Counted from the stretch's first letter, positions 629-64,000 are shown. The stretch is DNA of 64,000 nt from Octopus bimaculoides (GCF_001194135.2 NC_068992.1:7527380-7591379); one strand, 5' to 3'. A program made the numbers and translations. The notes: generated by a model not told the origin, from the letters alone.

Positions 629-38660
<38,032 letters not shown>

Positions 38661-47641: not shown

Positions 47642-47842
47642 TTATTGGTGAAAAGGTTCATCCTTAGCTTCAATGTTTGTGTAGTTGGAGAATTTTTGGT
47701 GAATCCAGTCAGAATAGAAGGCAACACGCGTATAGACACTGGGATATCCAGACGTTCGACATCCACTCACTCCCCAAGATGTAATACCAACAAGATAGTA
47801 ATAGCCATTACGTACACAAACTAATGGTCCACCGGAATCTCC
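47642..47842 (-). CDS. Protease exon 6: GDSGGPLVC...SWG...YPSVYTRV...PFHQ*
   Basis: ttccag|GGA GAT TCC; TAA at 47644-47642. Confidence 0.96.
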
Positions 47843-50800
47843 CTGGAAATAATGAACAGATAGTTAAATGGGTAGACAAACAGACACATATAAAAAGAAT
47901 AAAAGACTGGTTGACATGCAGATATAAAAATACAAAGGTAGGCAAATAGATATACTTATAAATATTCTAGATGTACTTTATAAAGCATATAGTGTTGCAC
48001 ACACGGGTGCACACACACACACAGAGTAAACATAAACTTAATGGAAAGTTCAAAACGTCATTCCTTGTATTTCAATAGAATGGTTTATTCCAAATATGAA
48101 TCCATAACTTAAACGATAGCATTCTGTAAGTCCATATTGTTATGTAACCATTCCATTTCTTTCAGGTAACATTCTGCTAAATATTTGGTGTGGGGGGCCA
48201 CGTCTCACTCCCATGTAGAATTGCTGTCCATATACATGCATGATACCATCTTCCTTTCCTGCGGAGAGAGAAACTGTTCGTAGCTAACGGAGGGAAAAGC
48301 TCTCTGAATTTCCTCCATCCTATTACACTCTGCATTCATCACTACAATTCTGGTCCCCTAGGTAGCAGAAGTGAGCCACCGGTGCATTTGAGAGAGGTGG
48401 TTTATAAATAGAAATGAAAACAAATCCCCAATATACTTACATTACATGCTCCGTTATCACCATTTCCAACACAAATATGTGAATTGAGGATTCGTCGTCG
48501 ACCCCACCGGATAGAACACTCTGAATTACTTCTGACATGAACTTGCAGTTCTTGCAGAATGCTCTGGTCTCCATAATCTATTAGACAGAGGATGATAATT
48601 ATATTAATGAAACAATAATAAGCAGATGAGCAACATTAAACACTGATCTAGAGCTAGCCGACCAAGCAGAGCCTAGCACCCCACCTCCGCTTTCTTGGGA
48701 ATTGGCTGTTTGAACTTATCACTACAAGATAATGAAACATTTGTCACTTACACATTGCTGTCAATATCTATAGTGGTTAAGAGGTACCTATTTACGGTTA
48801 CACAGCCTGGATATTTCAATGTTAAATACCTTAGCCATAGAAACAACACTACACTGATGATAAAATACATGTAGACAGGCTTTAATTTATACTGAATTTA
48901 TAATGGGAACACTTAACAGTTCTATCCATTTAGCAGTATATATATATATATATATATATATATACCCTAGTAAAGTTGTTTACCCCCAAGTCAAGAATTC
49001 CTATAATGGAAGGTGTTCCAGTTGTAATCATCCCATCACTTGTATATCTAAGACTACACTATCCAATGTGCCATTTTATTTTCAAAACAACAGGATGTGA
49101 TTTAAGGAATGCTTAGCTGCTATTTCTAGCAGTAAGACTGATCACACAGTCTCCCTCTTTGACTCGTAGGAAAACTGAGGTTGCAATTCTCAATGGCATT
49201 TTGCATTAGAAGGAGTGGTAATACATGTCTAGCAAGTGTAATGACAATATTAAACTAGAAGACTGAGAATTTAAAATTTGACTAAAGCCCTGTGAATGGA
49301 TTTGGGAGATGGAAACTGAAAGAAGCCCACAATGCATGCATACATTTATGCGTGTTAGTGAGTTGATATTGAGTGATAGCAGTAAGAAAGCATCACCATC
49401 ATACAAGCAGTCTGTGTTGTGAGTTAATTAAGCATTTAATTAAACAAGAAGACTAATTGAGTCAGCTAATTTGTTGAAGCTAACTCCACTCTGTGTTACT
49501 GCAAATGTCCCCTAAGTAAAGCATCAACACCATAATATAAGCCTCTTCCTCCTCTACAGAAAGCAACATCTTCTGATAGGACCCTATAGAGGAAGTGCCT
49601 AAAGGCTATCCCTATAATTTCCACAGGAATAGTGGGTGGAGAAGATGAATAGAAGTTACTCCCTAAAATACATCACTAATGCTAATTTTCAACCCTTTTT
49701 AAGAACTAAAATGTAAAATAAAACTCAGTGAGGTTTGAACCTGAATATAAAGGATCCATTTTAGTTTCTGAATCTTTGTACCAACATCATCATTATAAAC
49801 AACTGGTAAAATAGATCTTACCTTTTGTCTCACCCCAGCCCATTGTCCAACATTCATCGCCAGGACGAAAGCCAGCATTCTTGTCTGGGATGCAAGCTTG
49901 TCTAACGTAAAAACCAGCAACATCAGCAGGATGATCCAAACGCATTAAAGCAATGTCATTTGGATAATTACCCCCATTTATAAAATTGGGGTGCTGAAAT
50001 TGACAGAAAAGAATATGCAGTAGTAGTAGTATTGGTGGTGGTAGTAGTAGTAGTAGTCGTAGTAGTAGCAGTAGTAGTAGTGGTGGTGGTGGTGGTGGTG
50101 GTCTTGACAAATACATTGTTTTACCATCACAACAATGTACTAGCAACAGATTGTGATCAATCAAATCAGAATAAGATCAATGTATAAGGAATAATAGAGG
50201 GACAGAAAGAGAGGGAGATAGGGTGAGAGAGAGAGAGAGAAAGGGGACACATACTAATTGAGGGGAAAGAAAGAAATATAATTAAATTGGGTGAAGAAGA
50301 CAGTAGAAAAGCCAAAAAAAACAGAAATATTTGTGTGAAATGAATCAAAATATTTAATGAAGCTGTTTTTTTGGTAGAATTAAAACACAAATAACAAAAA
50401 AGAAATGAAATAAAATAAAGCAGAAGAGCAAGAAAGTGTATATCATGTGCTTACCTTTTAATACATTTGCTATAGAAAAACAAACACAAAGCGAATAGAC
50501 TTTGCATTATCATTGAGACAAATGGAAAAGCTTAAGTACCACGAGGCCATTCTCATGAATGATGGCAAACTGGTGGCTGAAGTGGGTGCTAGAATTGCAG
50601 GAGCTGGTACAGTAATGCTTGGGTAACGATCGAAAGAACAACATCATGAATACACTCTACCAAAATGGGATTCCTCTGAACGATCTCTCAAGTACCATTA
50701 CTCGACAGGGTGCATAATTTGGAGATCAAGGAGTCTTTCCAGTTTGAGATGGTCACAGCTTCAGCACTATGGACATGTGATTAGAATGTTGTCGGAAAGA

Positions 50801-52935
50801 ACTGCAAGATGGATTCTAAAAGCCAAACCAACTAGCAAAAGATCTAGGGTCTGACTAAGAATGAGATGGTTGGGTAACATCCATTGTCTCAATTGGTCAA
50901 GCTTGGAAATCTAGCAGGAAAGTGTAATGATGGTTATTTCTGATAAAACCTTATGAAAGAGGTTCTTGACGAGCTTACCTCAACAATCTTCTCAGGAATA
51001 ATAGGTAAAGAAAATGGATAGATGGATGGATGGACAGAAACCCTACCCCCAAAACAGTGTTATGGCCAAATTAGACCAGCAGTCAACTAATATTAGCAAC
51101 CAGATCATGAGTTTGAGAGTTCCCATTAAAAAGGGATGTTATTCTACCTTGATAGGTATTTGTGTTCCAATAATGGTAATCGACTCTGATGGTACAAACG
51201 TGGCTTATCTCAAGAGAAATGAACTGATATTAGTTCTTTCTAATTTTGGCACAGGGCCAGCAATTTTAGGGGAGGAAGAAGTCTATTATATTGATCCCAA
51301 AAGGATGAAAGGTAAAGTAGACTTCAGCAGAATTTGAACTCAGAATGTAAAGATAGACAAAATGTAGAAACCATGCCAAATCAGACTGGAATCTAGTGCA
51401 GCTTTCCAGCCCTGGTCAAGCTACCCAACCCATGCCAGCAAGGACAATGGATGCTAAATGATGATGATTTACTAACAAAATAAAGAATAAAGAAGAGAAA
51501 TCATTTATATACCCGTAAGATAAGATCTATTTTCCGATGCATTTCCTTTCCAGTGTTGACTCCAAGCTGGAATTCTCCCAAGATAGCTCTCCAGTCACTT
51601 TCCTTCTCAAACTGATTCCTGAAATATAAATGCATAAACAGGCTACAAACACTACTTTTCTTTACTAACACTGTACAAATGTTAGTCTTTATTCAGCAAC
51701 ATTCCAGAAAGACTAGATTTCAATAACTAATATTCTACAAAAGCTAATCTTCCTGTCTTTACAGCCACCACAGCGGAATGGTGTGTCAGTGTGTGTGTTG
51801 ACTGACATAGCAAACGGCTGGAGATGAAACTCTTGACAAAAGACAATGAGGTCCTGGATCCAAAGTATATAAAATTACACAATTAAACTGTAAAAACCTT
51901 GCCAAAACTAACCTCGGCTATGCTTGTGCCACGTAAAAAGCACTAAGTCCACTCTGCTGAGTGGTTGGTGTTAGGAAGGGCATCCAGCTGTAAAAATCCT
52001 GCCAAAACAGTAACAGAAGTTTGGTGCAGGCTTCTGCCTGGCCGGCTCTTGTCAAACCATTCCACTCATGGCAGCATGGAAGGCAGATGTTAAATGATAA
52101 TGATAATGATGATGATGAAGATGATGAAAGGAGCACCGAAATTCTTTTAAGTGCTTAGGTCTTCTATGGATCTTAATCCAACCCTGTTTTGATCCCAGTA
52201 TTCATTTTATAGATCTCTATGAAATGGCTAAGATTTATCTTTTTTAAACATAAAGGCATTCTTCAGTTTAGACAAATATACAAGGAAAAGTCCATCTTGG
52301 TGATATTTGAATTCAGAACAGTGGGTTACCCACCTAAAGCCCTTGATTGTACTTCCAGTCCTTTATATTTATTTATCTATTTTTTCAGTGGTTTGGCAAT
52401 GGGGTTCACCAAAATGCAATGATAATTTCTTACCCAAAAACACAATGTGCTGCGGTGATCACCCAACGTGGATGAATTAATGTTCCTCCACACACATGGC
52501 GTTTGGCCCATGTCAGCCGTAACGAAACCATCCAAGGCCATTTGCCTTCTTTTGACGGGATACCTCCGACTATCATATGTGTAGTCGCAACACCACATTC
52601 AGCTGGAAAATAGAGAAGAAACAATAACAAGTTGATTATCTGTGAGGTTTTTGGAATGTACAACTTTGATTTGTGCTGCCTTCCTCACTAAACTGACCAA
52701 ACAGGTTGCCTCAATCAGCAGAACATTCGTTTTTGTTTATTTTATTTTATTTTTTGCTCAGATAGATAGAAAGAGAGATATACAGACAGACAGATAGCTA
52801 GATAGATACATAGATAGACAAACAGACAGACATATAGATAGATAGATAGACAGGCGGACAGACAGACAGACAGACAAACAGATAGACAGACAGATAGATA
52901 GATAGATAGATAGTTAGACAGGCGGACAGACAGAC

Positions 52936-52983
<48 letters not shown>

Positions 52984-53747
52984 TTGAAATAATTAAAGAA
53001 ATGGGATGTTATAACATTCAAACCTTCTCCAAGTACCTCAACAAGGTATGTGAAAAGAGGCGGTTTCAACGAAGAATAGAAACCGGCTTGCAGAATTGCT
53101 TCTTCTAACTTATTAACAAAAACGTCACGAAATAATTTTGAAAAATAAGAGATGAAACAACAGGAATTCTTACCAATAGGGATTTGAGTTGAAAGATTGT
53201 CTTGCACAGATGTTTGCCTTTCTTTCCACTGTTGTTTTCCAGATGTAGAATATTTCCATTGCTTCGATGTAGGAGTAACGTTTGGTTGGCCCTTAATGGA
53301 TTTTGATGCATGTGTTGTTACTTCAGTTGTCGATGCCTCTGAAGTGAGCAGAAATGAAAACCTAGAAGACGGGGATGTACCGAGGTGTGTAACTGTAGTT
53401 TTACCGGTCACAACTGGTCTTTTGTCGTTAATTCCTGTGGAATTCATTTCCATTCTTCCGACTGTCTTGCAGTCATCCCACCTGGAACCAACTGGAACGC
53501 AGTTTGTCACTTTGTTCGACCAGACTCTGTCCATGGGACAAGGTGGCATTTGATGAGGTACGCCGTGTCCACATACAAAATACATAGAACAGTTGAAAGG
53601 ATGTCGTACCCATTGCATATCTTTTGATGTACACGGAAATTTGGCAATTGGCATAAAACGTCTGCTACGCCAACGAAAGAAATATCTACGCCTTGAGCAA
53701 ACGTTCAATATGATGACTAATAATATTAGGGTTCGTAGAAATAGCAT
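47642..53747 (-). CDS. Secreted chitin-binding (CBM14/peritrophin-A) S1A serine protease, chymotrypsin/elastase-like; 452 aa; 6 exons
   Basis: Exons 53747-53174, 52602-52434, 51618-51513, 49993-49822, 48577-48441 and 47842-47642 join in frame (1359 nt), all GT-AG. Signal peptide; C-x13-C-x5-C-x10-C-x12-C-x9-C; IVGG; TAAHC; NDIAL; GDSGGP; SWG; YPSVYTRV. Confidence 0.95.
48441..48577 (-). CDS. Protease exon 5: [13 protein letters not shown]...[13 protein letters not shown]
   Basis: taatag| ... AAT|gtaagt; phase 1-0. Confidence 0.95.
49822..49993 (-). CDS. Protease exon 4: HPNF...[10 protein letters not shown]...[10 protein letters not shown]
   Basis: tttcag| ... G|gtaag; phase 0-1. Confidence 0.96.
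50018..50101 (+). repeat. Compound (TAG)n/(TGG)n trinucleotide repeat beside the protease exon 4 acceptor
   Basis: Direct reading. Confidence 0.95.
50520..51030 (+). mobile_element. Decayed RTE-clade LINE 3' fragment, same family as 46-520, in protease intron 3
   Basis: EKLKY...[15 protein letters not shown]; shares tatggacatgtgat and ttctgataaaaccttat with 46-520. Confidence 0.75.
51513..51618 (-). CDS. Protease exon 3: [36 protein letters not shown]
   Basis: tttcag| ... CGG|gtata; phase 2-0; absent from ORF track; bridges the His and Asp exons. Confidence 0.9.
52434..52602 (-). CDS. Protease exon 2: [14 protein letters not shown]...HVCGGTLI...TAAHCVF
   Basis: ttccag| ... GG|gtaag; phase 1-2. 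Confidence 0.96.
52760..52983 (+). repeat. Compound (TAGA)n/(CAGA)n tetranucleotide array in protease intron 1
   Basis: Direct reading. Confidence 0.95.
53174..53747 (-). CDS. Protease exon 1: signal peptide, cationic 13-mer, CBM14 (53633-53469), Ser/Thr-rich linker
   Basis: ATG at 53747; ...ATT G|gtaag; phase 1. Confidence 0.92.
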
Positions 53748-54045
53748 TCTTAAGGTCTTTATATATGTGCATATATTATTCTACATTGATACATGACAGA
53801 GGTGTATTGATCTGACGAAGTACCGAATTATTTAGGGTATATATATTCTTCAACAAGATCGAAAAACTGAAAATTATTGAAAGCCATCGTTTATTTATAA
53901 TTAATATTTCTTTTGAATATCAATTCAAATTTCTGAAATATTCATCTTGCATGATCATAAAAATATGACAGTGTGTGTGTGTGTATGTGCGTGCGTGCGT
54001 GTGTGTGCGTGTGTGTGTGGCTCTGAAACTGCATTTGTGTACATG

Positions 54046-62441: not shown

Positions 62442-62527
62442 ATGGAACAACAAACTTCGGTGAAAGTTCTCAGCGCCACTCCGCAGCCATTTATCATTCC
62501 GGCTTATGTTTTAGATGACTTATGCAG
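62442..62527 (+). CDS. DCP2: mRNA-decapping enzyme 2, first coding exon: MEQQTSVKVLSATPQPFIIPAYVLDDLCS; remainder lies beyond the window or in a gap
   Basis: IPxxVLDDLCS is the conserved start of DCP2 Box A (human EIPGSVLDDLCSRF). Strong Kozak context (aaacATGg); AG|gtttgt donor at phase 2 in the Ser codon; CpG-rich surroundings. Confidence 0.85.
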
Positions 62528-63170
62528 GTTTGTTTGAATGTGTCTCTATTATGAATTATCTGTCAATCTATCACACACACACACACATATATATATACAC
62601 ATATATACACAATATATGTATATATATATATATATATAATTAAGTGTATTTCTTCTATCTTAATGAATAAAAATTCTTCTGATAGAATAAATGGGTTAAT
62701 AGAAACCAATGTAGCAAAGAACACAAAATAACTGGTTTAGTTCCTGTTACACACACACACACACACACANNNNNNNNNNNNNNNNNNNNNNNNNNNNNNN
62801 NNNNNNNNNNNNNNNNNNNNNNNNNNNNNNNNNNNNNNNNNNNNNNNNNNNNNNNNNNNNNNNNNNNNNNNNNNNNNNNNNNNNNNNNNNNNNNNNNNNN
62901 NNNNNNNNNNNNNNNNNNNNNNNNNNNNNNNNNNNNNNNNNNNNNNNNNNNNNNNNNNNNNNNNNNNNNNNNNNNNNNNNNNNNNNNNNNNNNNNNNNNN
63001 NNNNNNNNNNNNNNNNNNNNNNNNNNNNNNNNNNNNNNNNNNNNNNNNNNNNNNNNNNNNNNNNTTATATATATATATATACACACATACACAACTTTCG
63101 TGGTTTTTATTACTTGATATTATTTACCCGTTTAATATCCTCATCTTTTTGTTAGTTGGGAAGCTAGAAG

Positions 63171-63202
<32 letters not shown>

Positions 63203-63211
<9 letters not shown>

Positions 63212-63281
63212 TTAGGGGAAAGAACCAAGGTTTATGAACTCATCGATGATAAACCTTGGTTCTTTTCCCTAAAACTATATA
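63203..63281. repeat. Near-perfect inverted repeat: 32-bp arms, 1 mismatch, 15-nt loop
   Basis: Direct reading of both arms. Confidence 0.95.
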
Positions 63282-64000
63282 TTTTGTACTGTGAAACTTA
63301 ATTTAATTTCGGTTTTTAATACAATGATTTTAATTGAGTTTTTACCTGTAATTTTGGATGCTATCCCTAATATTATTTTATATATATATGTGTGTGTGTG
63401 TGTACTGCAAATATTCGAACAGAAATACAAAGAAAGAAAATAAATAATTTTAAAGCTTCCAAAACATGTCACAGTGTTACATTTACGTCAACATGACCTG
63501 GCAAAATTCATTCTAATTAATTAACTTCTAGTGAGGTAAATGAAAGCACATTTTATTACCTGTAGTCAGGGCTTCCTTGCACCACTTAATAATATCGAAA
63601 ACTTTACAACGATAAAATTTAGCTTTCAGAACTTCATTTAGATACAAAGGGTATAATCTATTCCGTTTTCCATGGCGGAATAGATTAGACGGTTTGAGTG
63701 GAACCGGTAAGTCGGAGAGCTTTACCAGGCACCAATCTGTTTATTTATACATACATAACTCGTTATATTTATAGTCGTCCAAGAAGCCATAAGTCGGCAA
63801 AAAACAGGCACTCGCATATTTGTCAAAAGAATGAGTATCCTAGTCAAAGTAAACAGTATTATAGATCCATTACAGCCAATCTGTTTCGCACTGGATATTA
63901 ACAGATATATATATATATATGTATGTATATATAGATATATATACAGATATATATGTATGTATATATAGATACAAATACATATATATGTATGTATATATAT

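Follow-up and report, generated by a model that had tools for sequence, protein, structure and literature searches.

A 64,000-nucleotide stretch of Octopus bimaculoides DNA (GCF_001194135.2, NC_068992.1:7527380-7591379; the whole stretch is referred to as the window, and positions are counted from its first nucleotide) carries a serine protease gene on its minus strand, between positions 53747 and 47642, in which a putative chitin-binding domain of the CBM14 type precedes the protease. The locus raises the question of what kind of enzyme is produced, how it might be activated, and where it would act. Taken as a whole, the results are best explained by a secreted modular zymogen of the S1A type, from an uncharacterized mollusc-restricted family, that is probably docked on chitin and tethered to its anchor by a disulfide. 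The gene was already annotated in RefSeq, and modular chitin-binding S1A proteases are known as a kind; new here are a mollusc-wide orthogroup with an apparent bivalve gap, a non-tryptic pocket, and an invariant hydrophobic activation bond. The pocket and the bond, Met followed by Ile in Octopus, go beyond an original prediction made from the same DNA and alter the likely activation and substrates of the enzyme.

The Gene and Its Product

Splice reconstruction joined six exons, separated by introns that are all GT...AG, into a coding sequence (CDS) of 1359 nt for a protein of 452 amino acids, as the original prediction had proposed. The start ATG at 53747 encodes the first Met downstream of an in-frame stop in the minus-strand translation. 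The spliced protein is RefSeq XP_014772000.1, "serine protease 30 [Octopus bimaculoides]" (identity 100%, coverage 100%), and the locus lies on chromosome record CM046612.1 of assembly GCA_001194135.2, where the public gene range is exactly the CDS span (47642..53747). The protein had previously been placed in no named gene; the gene does carry a RefSeq name, and that name is automatic and not a characterization. No paper citing the accessions of the octopus protein or of its Biomphalaria and Aplysia orthologs was found in a literature search, and protein and literature searches revealed no characterized one-to-one ortholog with a known unrelated role, a finding that would have spoken against the original prediction.

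The counterpart in O. sinensis (XP_036363676.1) likewise has 452 amino acids, and the O. vulgaris model is shorter and carries the automatic name "proteinase stubble-like". Argonauta and the chiton share this six-exon layout, including a single first exon that carries the signal peptide, the CBM14, and the spacer. The gene is real and intact, and its support is far above chance expectation. Its features, all on the minus strand, are listed below with chymotrypsin numbering in parentheses.

47642..53747, minus: whole coding region, six exons, 452 codons and stop (XP_014772000.1)
53174..53747, minus: exon 1, 574 nt, ends in phase 1; signal peptide, basic stretch, CBM14, and whole spacer
53694..53747, minus: predicted signal peptide, amino acids 1-18; cleavage inferred from the -3/-1 rule (V-C-S)
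53655-53693, minus: basic stretch of 13 amino acids, following the signal peptide
53469..53633, minus: CBM14 (peritrophin-A), Cys39-Cys93, 55 amino acids with six Cys; from Pfam, alignment, AlphaFold2, and fold search
53174..53468, minus: Ser/Thr-rich Cys-free spacer, amino acids 94-192; from composition and low model confidence (codon 192 is divided by intron 1, with bases two and three at 52602-52601)
52434..52602, minus: exon 2; Cys194, activation bond, and His244
52595-52597, minus: Cys194 (Cys1); from alignment to chymotrypsinogen
52574-52576 and 52571-52573, minus: Met201 and Ile202, the two sides of the activation bond, in exon 2
52445-52447, minus: His244 (His57); from alignment to chymotrypsinogen
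51513..51618, minus: exon 3; amino acids 249-283, catalytic domain
49822..49993, minus: exon 4; Asp296 and Cys317
49955-49957, minus: Asp296 (Asp102); from alignment to chymotrypsinogen
49892-49894, minus: Cys317 (Cys122), in QACIP; from alignment to chymotrypsinogen
48441..48577, minus: exon 5; Gly383 within GNGDNGACN
48450-48452, minus: Gly383 (position 189, floor of the S1 pocket); from alignment
47642..47842, minus: exon 6, stop included; GDSGGP, Gly410 (216), Ser421 (226), and C-terminal tail
47834-47836, minus: Ser389 (Ser195), in GDSGGP
47642-47644, minus: TAA stop, in exon 6

The CBM14 Domain, the N-Terminus, and the Spacer

Sequence profile and modeled fold both place the N-terminal module in the CBM14/peritrophin-A group. 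Pfam CBM_14 (PF01607) matches residues 39-86 with 24.5 bits in the full protein (cut-off 22.1) and with 28.9 bits when the isolated domain is scanned, and the cut-off is exceeded in all seven family members tested (best E 3.8e-08). The predicted six-Cys pattern with a spacing of 13/5/10/12/9 is exact at Cys39, Cys53, Cys59, Cys70, Cys83, and Cys93, and the span from the first to the sixth Cys is exactly 55 amino acids in the nine orthologs measured (9/9, Octopus included). The motifs W-V-R, VWSN, and NCVP..SRW(D/N)DC are invariant in the family alignment. An AlphaFold2 model of the domain alone has a predicted local distance difference test score (pLDDT) of 82.7, and the ten best matches of this model in the PDB are all CBM14 or tachycitin-fold domains (including 5hbf, 4zce, 4z4a, 2mfk, 6so0, 8in6, and 1dqc; probabilities 0.98-1.00, template modeling (TM) scores 0.51-0.60). 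The matched proteins include the CBM14 of human chitotriosidase CHIT1, Der p 23, Avr4, Blo t 12, tachycitin, and Aplysia EHEP. The E-values of the fold search are modest (best 3.8e-03) because the domain is small.

The hydrophobic N-terminus was modeled as a helix at residues 2-17 (AlphaFold2), and the orthologs carry canonical signal peptides in the same place. Two other interpretations of this region were rejected: a type II membrane anchor like that of the TMPRSS proteases, to which some of the automatic names point, because the positive charges follow, and do not precede, a short hydrophobic segment and the orthologs have ordinary cleavable signal peptides, and a conserved furin site (RSRR↓F, amino acids 27-31), which is not kept even in Argonauta.

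The Ser/Thr-rich spacer of about 100 amino acids that had been predicted corresponds to residues 94-192, with 31% Ser and Thr and no Cys, and is predicted to be disordered (AlphaFold2 pLDDT <50). Across the orthologs the spacer is Cys-free and varies in length from 89 to 353 amino acids, and even between Octopus and Argonauta it shows merely 38% identity. Such a pattern of conservation would arise if two functional modules were held together by a leash of which only the general character mattered.

The Catalytic Domain and the Activation Bond

The C-terminal part of the protein is predicted to be an active S1A peptidase of the chymotrypsin fold. Pfam Trypsin (PF00089) matches residues 202-433 (E=1.8e-60, profile positions 1-220 of 220), so that both Pfam domains suggested as a check on the architecture were matched above cut-off. 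Plasma kallikrein is the best match among solved structures (E=2.4e-52), in an alignment that begins at the equivalent of Cys1, and the AlphaFold2 model of the catalytic domain has a pLDDT of ~90. Residues were numbered by aligning eight family members to bovine chymotrypsinogen, a reference that was checked for length and landmark residues. The proposed catalytic triad is intact, with His244 at the position of chymotrypsin His57, Asp296 at that of Asp102, and Ser389 at that of Ser195. These three residues, Asp388 (Asp194), and the Ile202-Val-Gly-Gly start of the mature domain (Ile16) are invariant in the family; the last two are required for the oxyanion hole.

All five Cys pairs of the chymotrypsin disulfides are present, including the pair formed by the Cys eight residues before IVGG (in ECGVATTHM) and its partner in QACIP, which had been predicted to keep the pro-region attached and correspond to Cys194 and Cys317 (Cys1-Cys122). 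Cys122 is found in eight of the eight aligned members and Cys1 in seven, the eighth model starting at the Met before IVGG. The protein thus has the Cys residues typical of two-chain S1A proteases, and by homology the Cys194-Cys317 bond would be expected to form.

The S1 pocket consists of Gly189, Ala190, Asn192, Gly216, and Ser226 and is invariant in the eight members aligned; independently, the alignment with plasma kallikrein has Gly in place of Asp189 and Ser in place of Gly226. Every family sequence recovered has Met or Leu as the P1 residue of the activation bond, directly before IVGG (the two residues ending at P1 are HM, HL, KM, NM, NL, SM, or SL; P1 in Octopus is Met201). For comparison, Arg or Lys occupies this position in ~80% of the 438 homologous S1A domains that were fetched.

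With a Gly189/Gly216/Ser226 pocket instead of Asp189, the enzyme is, as judged from these residues, not trypsin-like, and since it lacks both Asp189 and a basic P1 residue the names "trypsin" and "tryptase" are unsuitable. An open, uncharged S1 pocket of this kind predicts cleavage after medium-to-large hydrophobic residues, as by chymotrypsin or elastase 2; Arg and Lys should not be accepted at P1. The combination of Gly216 and Ser226 is presumably the elastase-2 arrangement, with Leu, Met, Phe, or Tyr at P1, and is taken here as a lead only. The predicted preference fits the protein's own activation bond, as the P1 residue is always Met or Leu.

An Orthologous Family in Molluscs

The family was recovered by two large protein-collection searches and one exhaustive HMMER search of cluster representatives. 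Among the cephalopods it includes three species of Octopus and Argonauta, and among the chitons Liolophura. The gastropod members are Patella, Haliotis, Batillaria, Babylonia, Nucella, and Lymnaea, together with Physella, Biomphalaria, Aplysia, Elysia, Plakobranchus, and Gigantopelta. Complete gene models are all alike, with a signal peptide, one CBM14, a spacer, and then the protease. Some models from Batillaria, Babylonia, Haliotis, Nucella, and Lymnaea are without the CBM14 exon, which is probably due to truncated prediction.

The identity of the catalytic domain (~250 amino acids) to that of Octopus is 90% in Argonauta, 72% in the chiton, and 69% in Patella, and for all full-length catalytic domains it ranges from 98% (O. 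sinensis) to 60%. The CBM14 ranges from 98% (O. sinensis) to 49%, with 49-64% outside the cephalopods. When the catalytic domain of Patella was used as the query, orthologs matched at 67-77% identity and the next matches at ≤48%. No ortholog was seen among the bivalve matches to this query, a search with patchy retrieval in which at least 11 genera (Ruditapes, Ostrea, Crassostrea, Mizuhopecten, Dreissena, Saccostrea, Argopecten, Pinctada, Tegillarca, Sinanodonta, and Pecten) are present at 36-45% identity as chymotrypsinogen-like paralogs. These comparisons delimit a compact, orthologous, and uncharacterized family in octopods, a chiton, and many gastropods. At least eight automatic names are in use within it, among them serine protease 30, stubble, TMPRSS9-like, TMPRSS5-like, TMPRSS2, tryptase-2-like, plasma kallikrein-like, and mucin-5AC-like.

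Comparison with Known Modular Proteases

In architecture the closest known proteins are Sp22D of Anopheles gambiae, Tequila/graal of Drosophila, and SP23 of Apis, and in likely activation mechanism they are ModSP and HP14. Like the octopus protein, the proteins of the Sp22D group are secreted mosaic S1A proteases with a C-terminal catalytic domain, and N-terminal peritrophin-type domains and a mucin-like or low-complexity region precede the protease. Sp22D binds chitin (PMC1761132). The insect proteins are, however, far larger, with 2-15 chitin-binding domains and SRCR, LDLa, and other modules, whereas Pfam identifies one CBM14 and one Trypsin domain only in the octopus protein. Apis SP23 is predicted to be trypsin-like (Asp189/Gly/Gly) and has Lys at its activation site (IFQK↓VVRG; PMC1761132), unlike the mollusc family with Gly189/Gly216/Ser226 and Met or Leu at P1. 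The octopus protein and the insect Sp22D group are not orthologs, as none of the latter is among the best search matches, and on this comparison the octopus protein falls outside the Sp22D/Tequila orthogroup.

ModSP of Drosophila and HP14 of Manduca are chymoelastase-like initiators that prefer Leu at P1 and autoactivate on polysaccharide with recognition proteins (PMC10732536), and the honey-bee ortholog of HP14/ModSP, SP49, has the activation site SKTL↓IVNG (PMC1761132). ModSP, HP14, and MSP of Tenebrio share with the octopus protein a non-tryptic S1A domain and an activation bond of their own that follows a hydrophobic residue. They differ in that they use LDLa, Sushi, and Wonton modules that need separate pattern-recognition proteins, in contrast to the built-in CBM14 of the octopus protein, and in that they have no mucin-like spacer and are unrelated in orthology to the mollusc family. 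The octopus protein thus resembles an initiator by its non-tryptic pocket and its own hydrophobic P1 residue, a resemblance that would be functional only and does not extend to homology of the modules. By analogy, the octopus enzyme may work like ModSP and HP14 and activate itself on a polymer.

Plasma kallikrein, factor XI, enteropeptidase, and the TMPRSS proteases provide the best matches among solved structures, and in them a disulfide of the Cys1-Cys122 type retains the non-catalytic chain. Unlike the mollusc family, every one of them is trypsin-like and is activated at a bond that follows Arg or Lys. Apple, LDLa, SEA, or transmembrane modules serve as their anchors in place of chitin-binding domains, and their identity is only ~35-40%.

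The closest paralogs are lophotrochozoan chymotrypsinogen- and elastase-like S1A proteins with 36-48% identity, several of which share the GACNGDSGGP motif and hence Gly189. The identity gap (67-77% versus ≤48%) places them outside the orthogroup, and various residues occur at their activation sites, Arg and Lys among them. A second chiton protein with both a CBM14 and a trypsin domain, the Liolophura sinensis "elastase-1-like" protein P0210 (414 amino acids), is 42% identical to the catalytic domain of Patella and has Gly189 and a Tyr at P1 of its activation site (TTPY↓IVGG). Among the matches to the Patella query with precomputed Pfam domains, P0210 is the only lophotrochozoan paralog with a CBM14. 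P0210 suggests that molluscs evolved fusions of CBM14 with chymotrypsin-like proteases more than once, or that such fusions belong to a broader set.

Proposed Mechanism

According to the preferred reading, the signal peptide would be removed and the N-terminal CBM14 would then dock the protein on chitin, with the disordered Ser/Thr-rich spacer, probably O-glycosylated, as a leash. Cleavage between Met201 and Ile202 would render the catalytic domain active, and the Cys194-Cys317 (Cys1-Cys122) disulfide would keep the active domain covalently on its anchor. The chitin surface may concentrate the zymogens so that they activate one another (trans-autoactivation), and the activated enzymes would trim proteins that are embedded in or bound to the chitin. 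Trans-autoactivation is the simplest model because the protein's own activation bond suits the predicted P1 preference. The original prediction that the active enzyme would remain anchored to chitin through its CBM14 and the Cys1-Cys122 bond agrees with all in-silico tests, and it draws on homology with other S1A proteases.

Biological Role and Alternative Readings

The favored role of the chitin-docked protease, and the least certain part of the reading, is the processing or turnover of matrix proteins in the animal's own chitinous structures (radula, beak, and gut or sucker cuticle). This role is favored because the family is kept in the radula-bearing classes and is not seen in the bivalves, a distribution that suggests a link to the animal's own chitinous feeding or cuticular structures. 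A more far-reaching version holds that a mollusc-specific, self-activating chitin-surface protease arose with the radula, jaws, and beak and was lost with them in the bivalves. Here newly made or worn chitin would be the docking site of the zymogens, which would trans-activate by cleavage at the Met/Leu↓Ile bond and then perform a conserved step of matrix maturation or recycling. This version is tentative and, as a whole, unlikely to hold.

Several points weigh against the chitin-docked protease and its proposed role. The CBM14 score of the full-length protein lies merely 2.4 bits over the Pfam cut-off, and a basic cluster sits right behind the hydrophobic N-terminus, which is unusual for a signal peptide. 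The annotated gene range equals the bare CDS span and so gives no sign of transcript support, and no expression, proteomic, or biochemical data on the gene or its orthologs were found in the literature. Four elements of the model are deduced from sequence: that the protein binds chitin, that the interchain disulfide forms, which residues are preferred at P1, and that the zymogen autoactivates. The apparent absence from the bivalves rests on patchy retrieval, as the search with the Patella query missed its own parent protein (P0004) as well as P0001 and P0003; the exhaustive HMMER search was made on 50%-identity representatives, and a bivalve member could hide within another cluster. No decapodiform or Nautilus ortholog was seen either, which may merely reflect database coverage. 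Bivalves have chitin too, in the shell and the gastric shield, and the link to the radula is correlative only. In the radula, shell-matrix, salivary-gland, and digestive-gland literature that was searched, no mention of the protein was found, and no characterized mollusc chitin-binding serine protease was found in the literature.

A serious rival is an immune role of the Sp22D type, in which the protein would be a humoral or hemocyte sensor of foreign chitin (fungi, parasites, or ingested cuticle) that autoactivates and starts a proteolytic defense, by analogy with mosquito Sp22D, the initiators ModSP and HP14, and horseshoe-crab factor C. The combination of a chitin-binding module, a mucin-like region, and an S1A domain resembles that of the chitin-binding Sp22D and of the infection-induced Tequila (PMC1761132); a non-tryptic enzyme with a hydrophobic P1 residue of its own is the signature of the autoactivating initiators, and the CBM14 fold matches include tachycitin, an antimicrobial chitin-binding protein. 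However, neither a clip-domain protein or other cascade partner nearby nor a paralog in the window was seen, and bivalves should also have kept an antifungal sensor, yet no ortholog was seen among their patchily retrieved matches. The 72% identity between the octopus and chiton catalytic domains would, furthermore, suit an enzyme with a housekeeping or developmental task better than an immune recognition factor, which evolves fast. On balance, a chitin-triggered immune protease is considered rather improbable.

A protease of the gut or the saliva (venom) that acts on chitin-rich prey, with the CBM14 attaching to crustacean cuticle and the protease digesting cuticle-bound protein, was among the roles named in the original prediction and is now disfavored as quite improbable. 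Serine proteases and chitinases are indeed abundant among the secretions of octopus salivary glands (PMC12607849), a chitin anchor would serve to gather the protease on prey cuticle, and a chymotrypsin-like specificity fits bulk protein digestion. Salivary or venom proteases of cephalopods would be expected to be lineage-specific, multi-copy, and fast-evolving, with expression in the posterior salivary gland, whereas this gene is present as one copy in the window and not as a tandem array (see below), is syntenic between octopods, and is highly conserved. Its catalytic domain is kept at 60-72% identity in the chiton (72%), grazing limpets, and freshwater pulmonates, none of which eat crustaceans, and this wide distribution, which includes herbivorous limpets and snails, argues against a venom or crustacean-cuticle specialization and in favor of either action on the animal's own chitinous structures or an immune response triggered by chitin. 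Digestive chymotrypsin-like enzymes are, moreover, normally without a long tether, and the salivary and digestive literature examined makes no mention of such a protein.

That the CBM14 binds a protein or another ligand in place of chitin, with the protease tethered elsewhere, is very improbable: the peritrophin-A-like domains of Aplysia EHEP do bind phlorotannin, the EHEP-tannic acid structure is among the fold matches, and the full-length Pfam score is marginal, but the six-Cys spacing is kept, the aromatic residues characteristic of CBM14 (YF before Cys3, W after Cys4, and W before Cys6) are invariant or conservatively replaced in the family, and the best fold matches (CHIT1 CBM14, Der p 23, Avr4, and tachycitin) are proven chitin binders.

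Genomic Neighborhood

The protease gene is flanked by two plus-strand genes, mTOR, which ends at ~38660, and a NUDIX (DCP2-like) gene, which starts at ~62442. The same two genes adjoin the ortholog in Argonauta hians, where the neighbor protein bears DCP2 and NUDIX domains, and the mTOR-protease-NUDIX/DCP2 arrangement is a conserved octopod neighborhood with rearranged orientations. At the chiton (Liolophura) locus no neighbor was called within 10 kb. A tblastn search of the protein against the whole 64-kb window matched its own six exons only and no paralog, and the gene is therefore single-copy in the window and not part of a tandem array. No clip-domain protein or other cascade partner was seen near the gene.

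The 3' part of mTOR takes up the left 60% of the window (1-38660, plus strand), in convergent orientation to the protease gene. An exon with HEAT repeats can be read in an open reading frame at 2183-2608 (plus strand), and the public record gives an mTOR product of 2497 amino acids with its end near 38660. The NUDIX-domain gene (62442-64000, plus strand; 357-amino-acid product), which runs divergently from the protease gene, starts ~8.7 kb upstream of it. No RNA genes were found in the 38-64 kb region. Runs of N (assembly gaps) are present at ~30.4, 42.3-43.2, 44.1-44.4, 59.1-60.1, 61.3-61.9, and 62.7-63.1 kb, with (TA)n or (TATG)-like simple repeats on their flanks. The protease gene contains none of these gaps, and at least two lie at the start of the NUDIX gene or close to it.

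Upstream of the start codon, a TATA-like TATATAAAG is located at 53757-53765 (minus strand), merely 10-18 nt from the ATG. Given this position and a gene range equal to the CDS span, either the 5' untranslated region is extremely short, or the annotation lacks a non-coding exon farther upstream or the true start site. A (GT)24 microsatellite lies just upstream of the start codon at 53971-54019. The introns hold only microsatellites and the decayed tail of a long interspersed nuclear element (LINE). The microsatellites are (AGAT)56 in intron 1 (52760-52983) and (AGT/GGT)n in intron 3 (50019-50090, directly adjoining exon 4), and the gene's microsatellites could serve as polymorphic markers. The putative retrotransposon tail is in intron 3 (50690-50860, plus strand), and one of its frames resembles the ...LRW.GHV.RM... 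motif that LINE reverse transcriptases carry close to their C-terminus.

Significance

Chitin-binding modular serine proteases are known in insects, and nothing of the kind was found to have been studied in molluscs. The mollusc family is a minimal version of this architecture, with one anchor, one leash, and one protease, and its catalytic domain is unusually well kept from chitons to octopuses. The automatic ortholog names are misleading, and a single family description could replace them. The activation site points to self-activation on chitin, which is testable by ordinary biochemistry.

If the apparent loss in the bivalves holds, the gene would become a concrete candidate for an enzyme that takes part in the construction or renewal of the radula and beak, and if the family did arise with the radula and beak, it would provide the first protease tied to the making of either.

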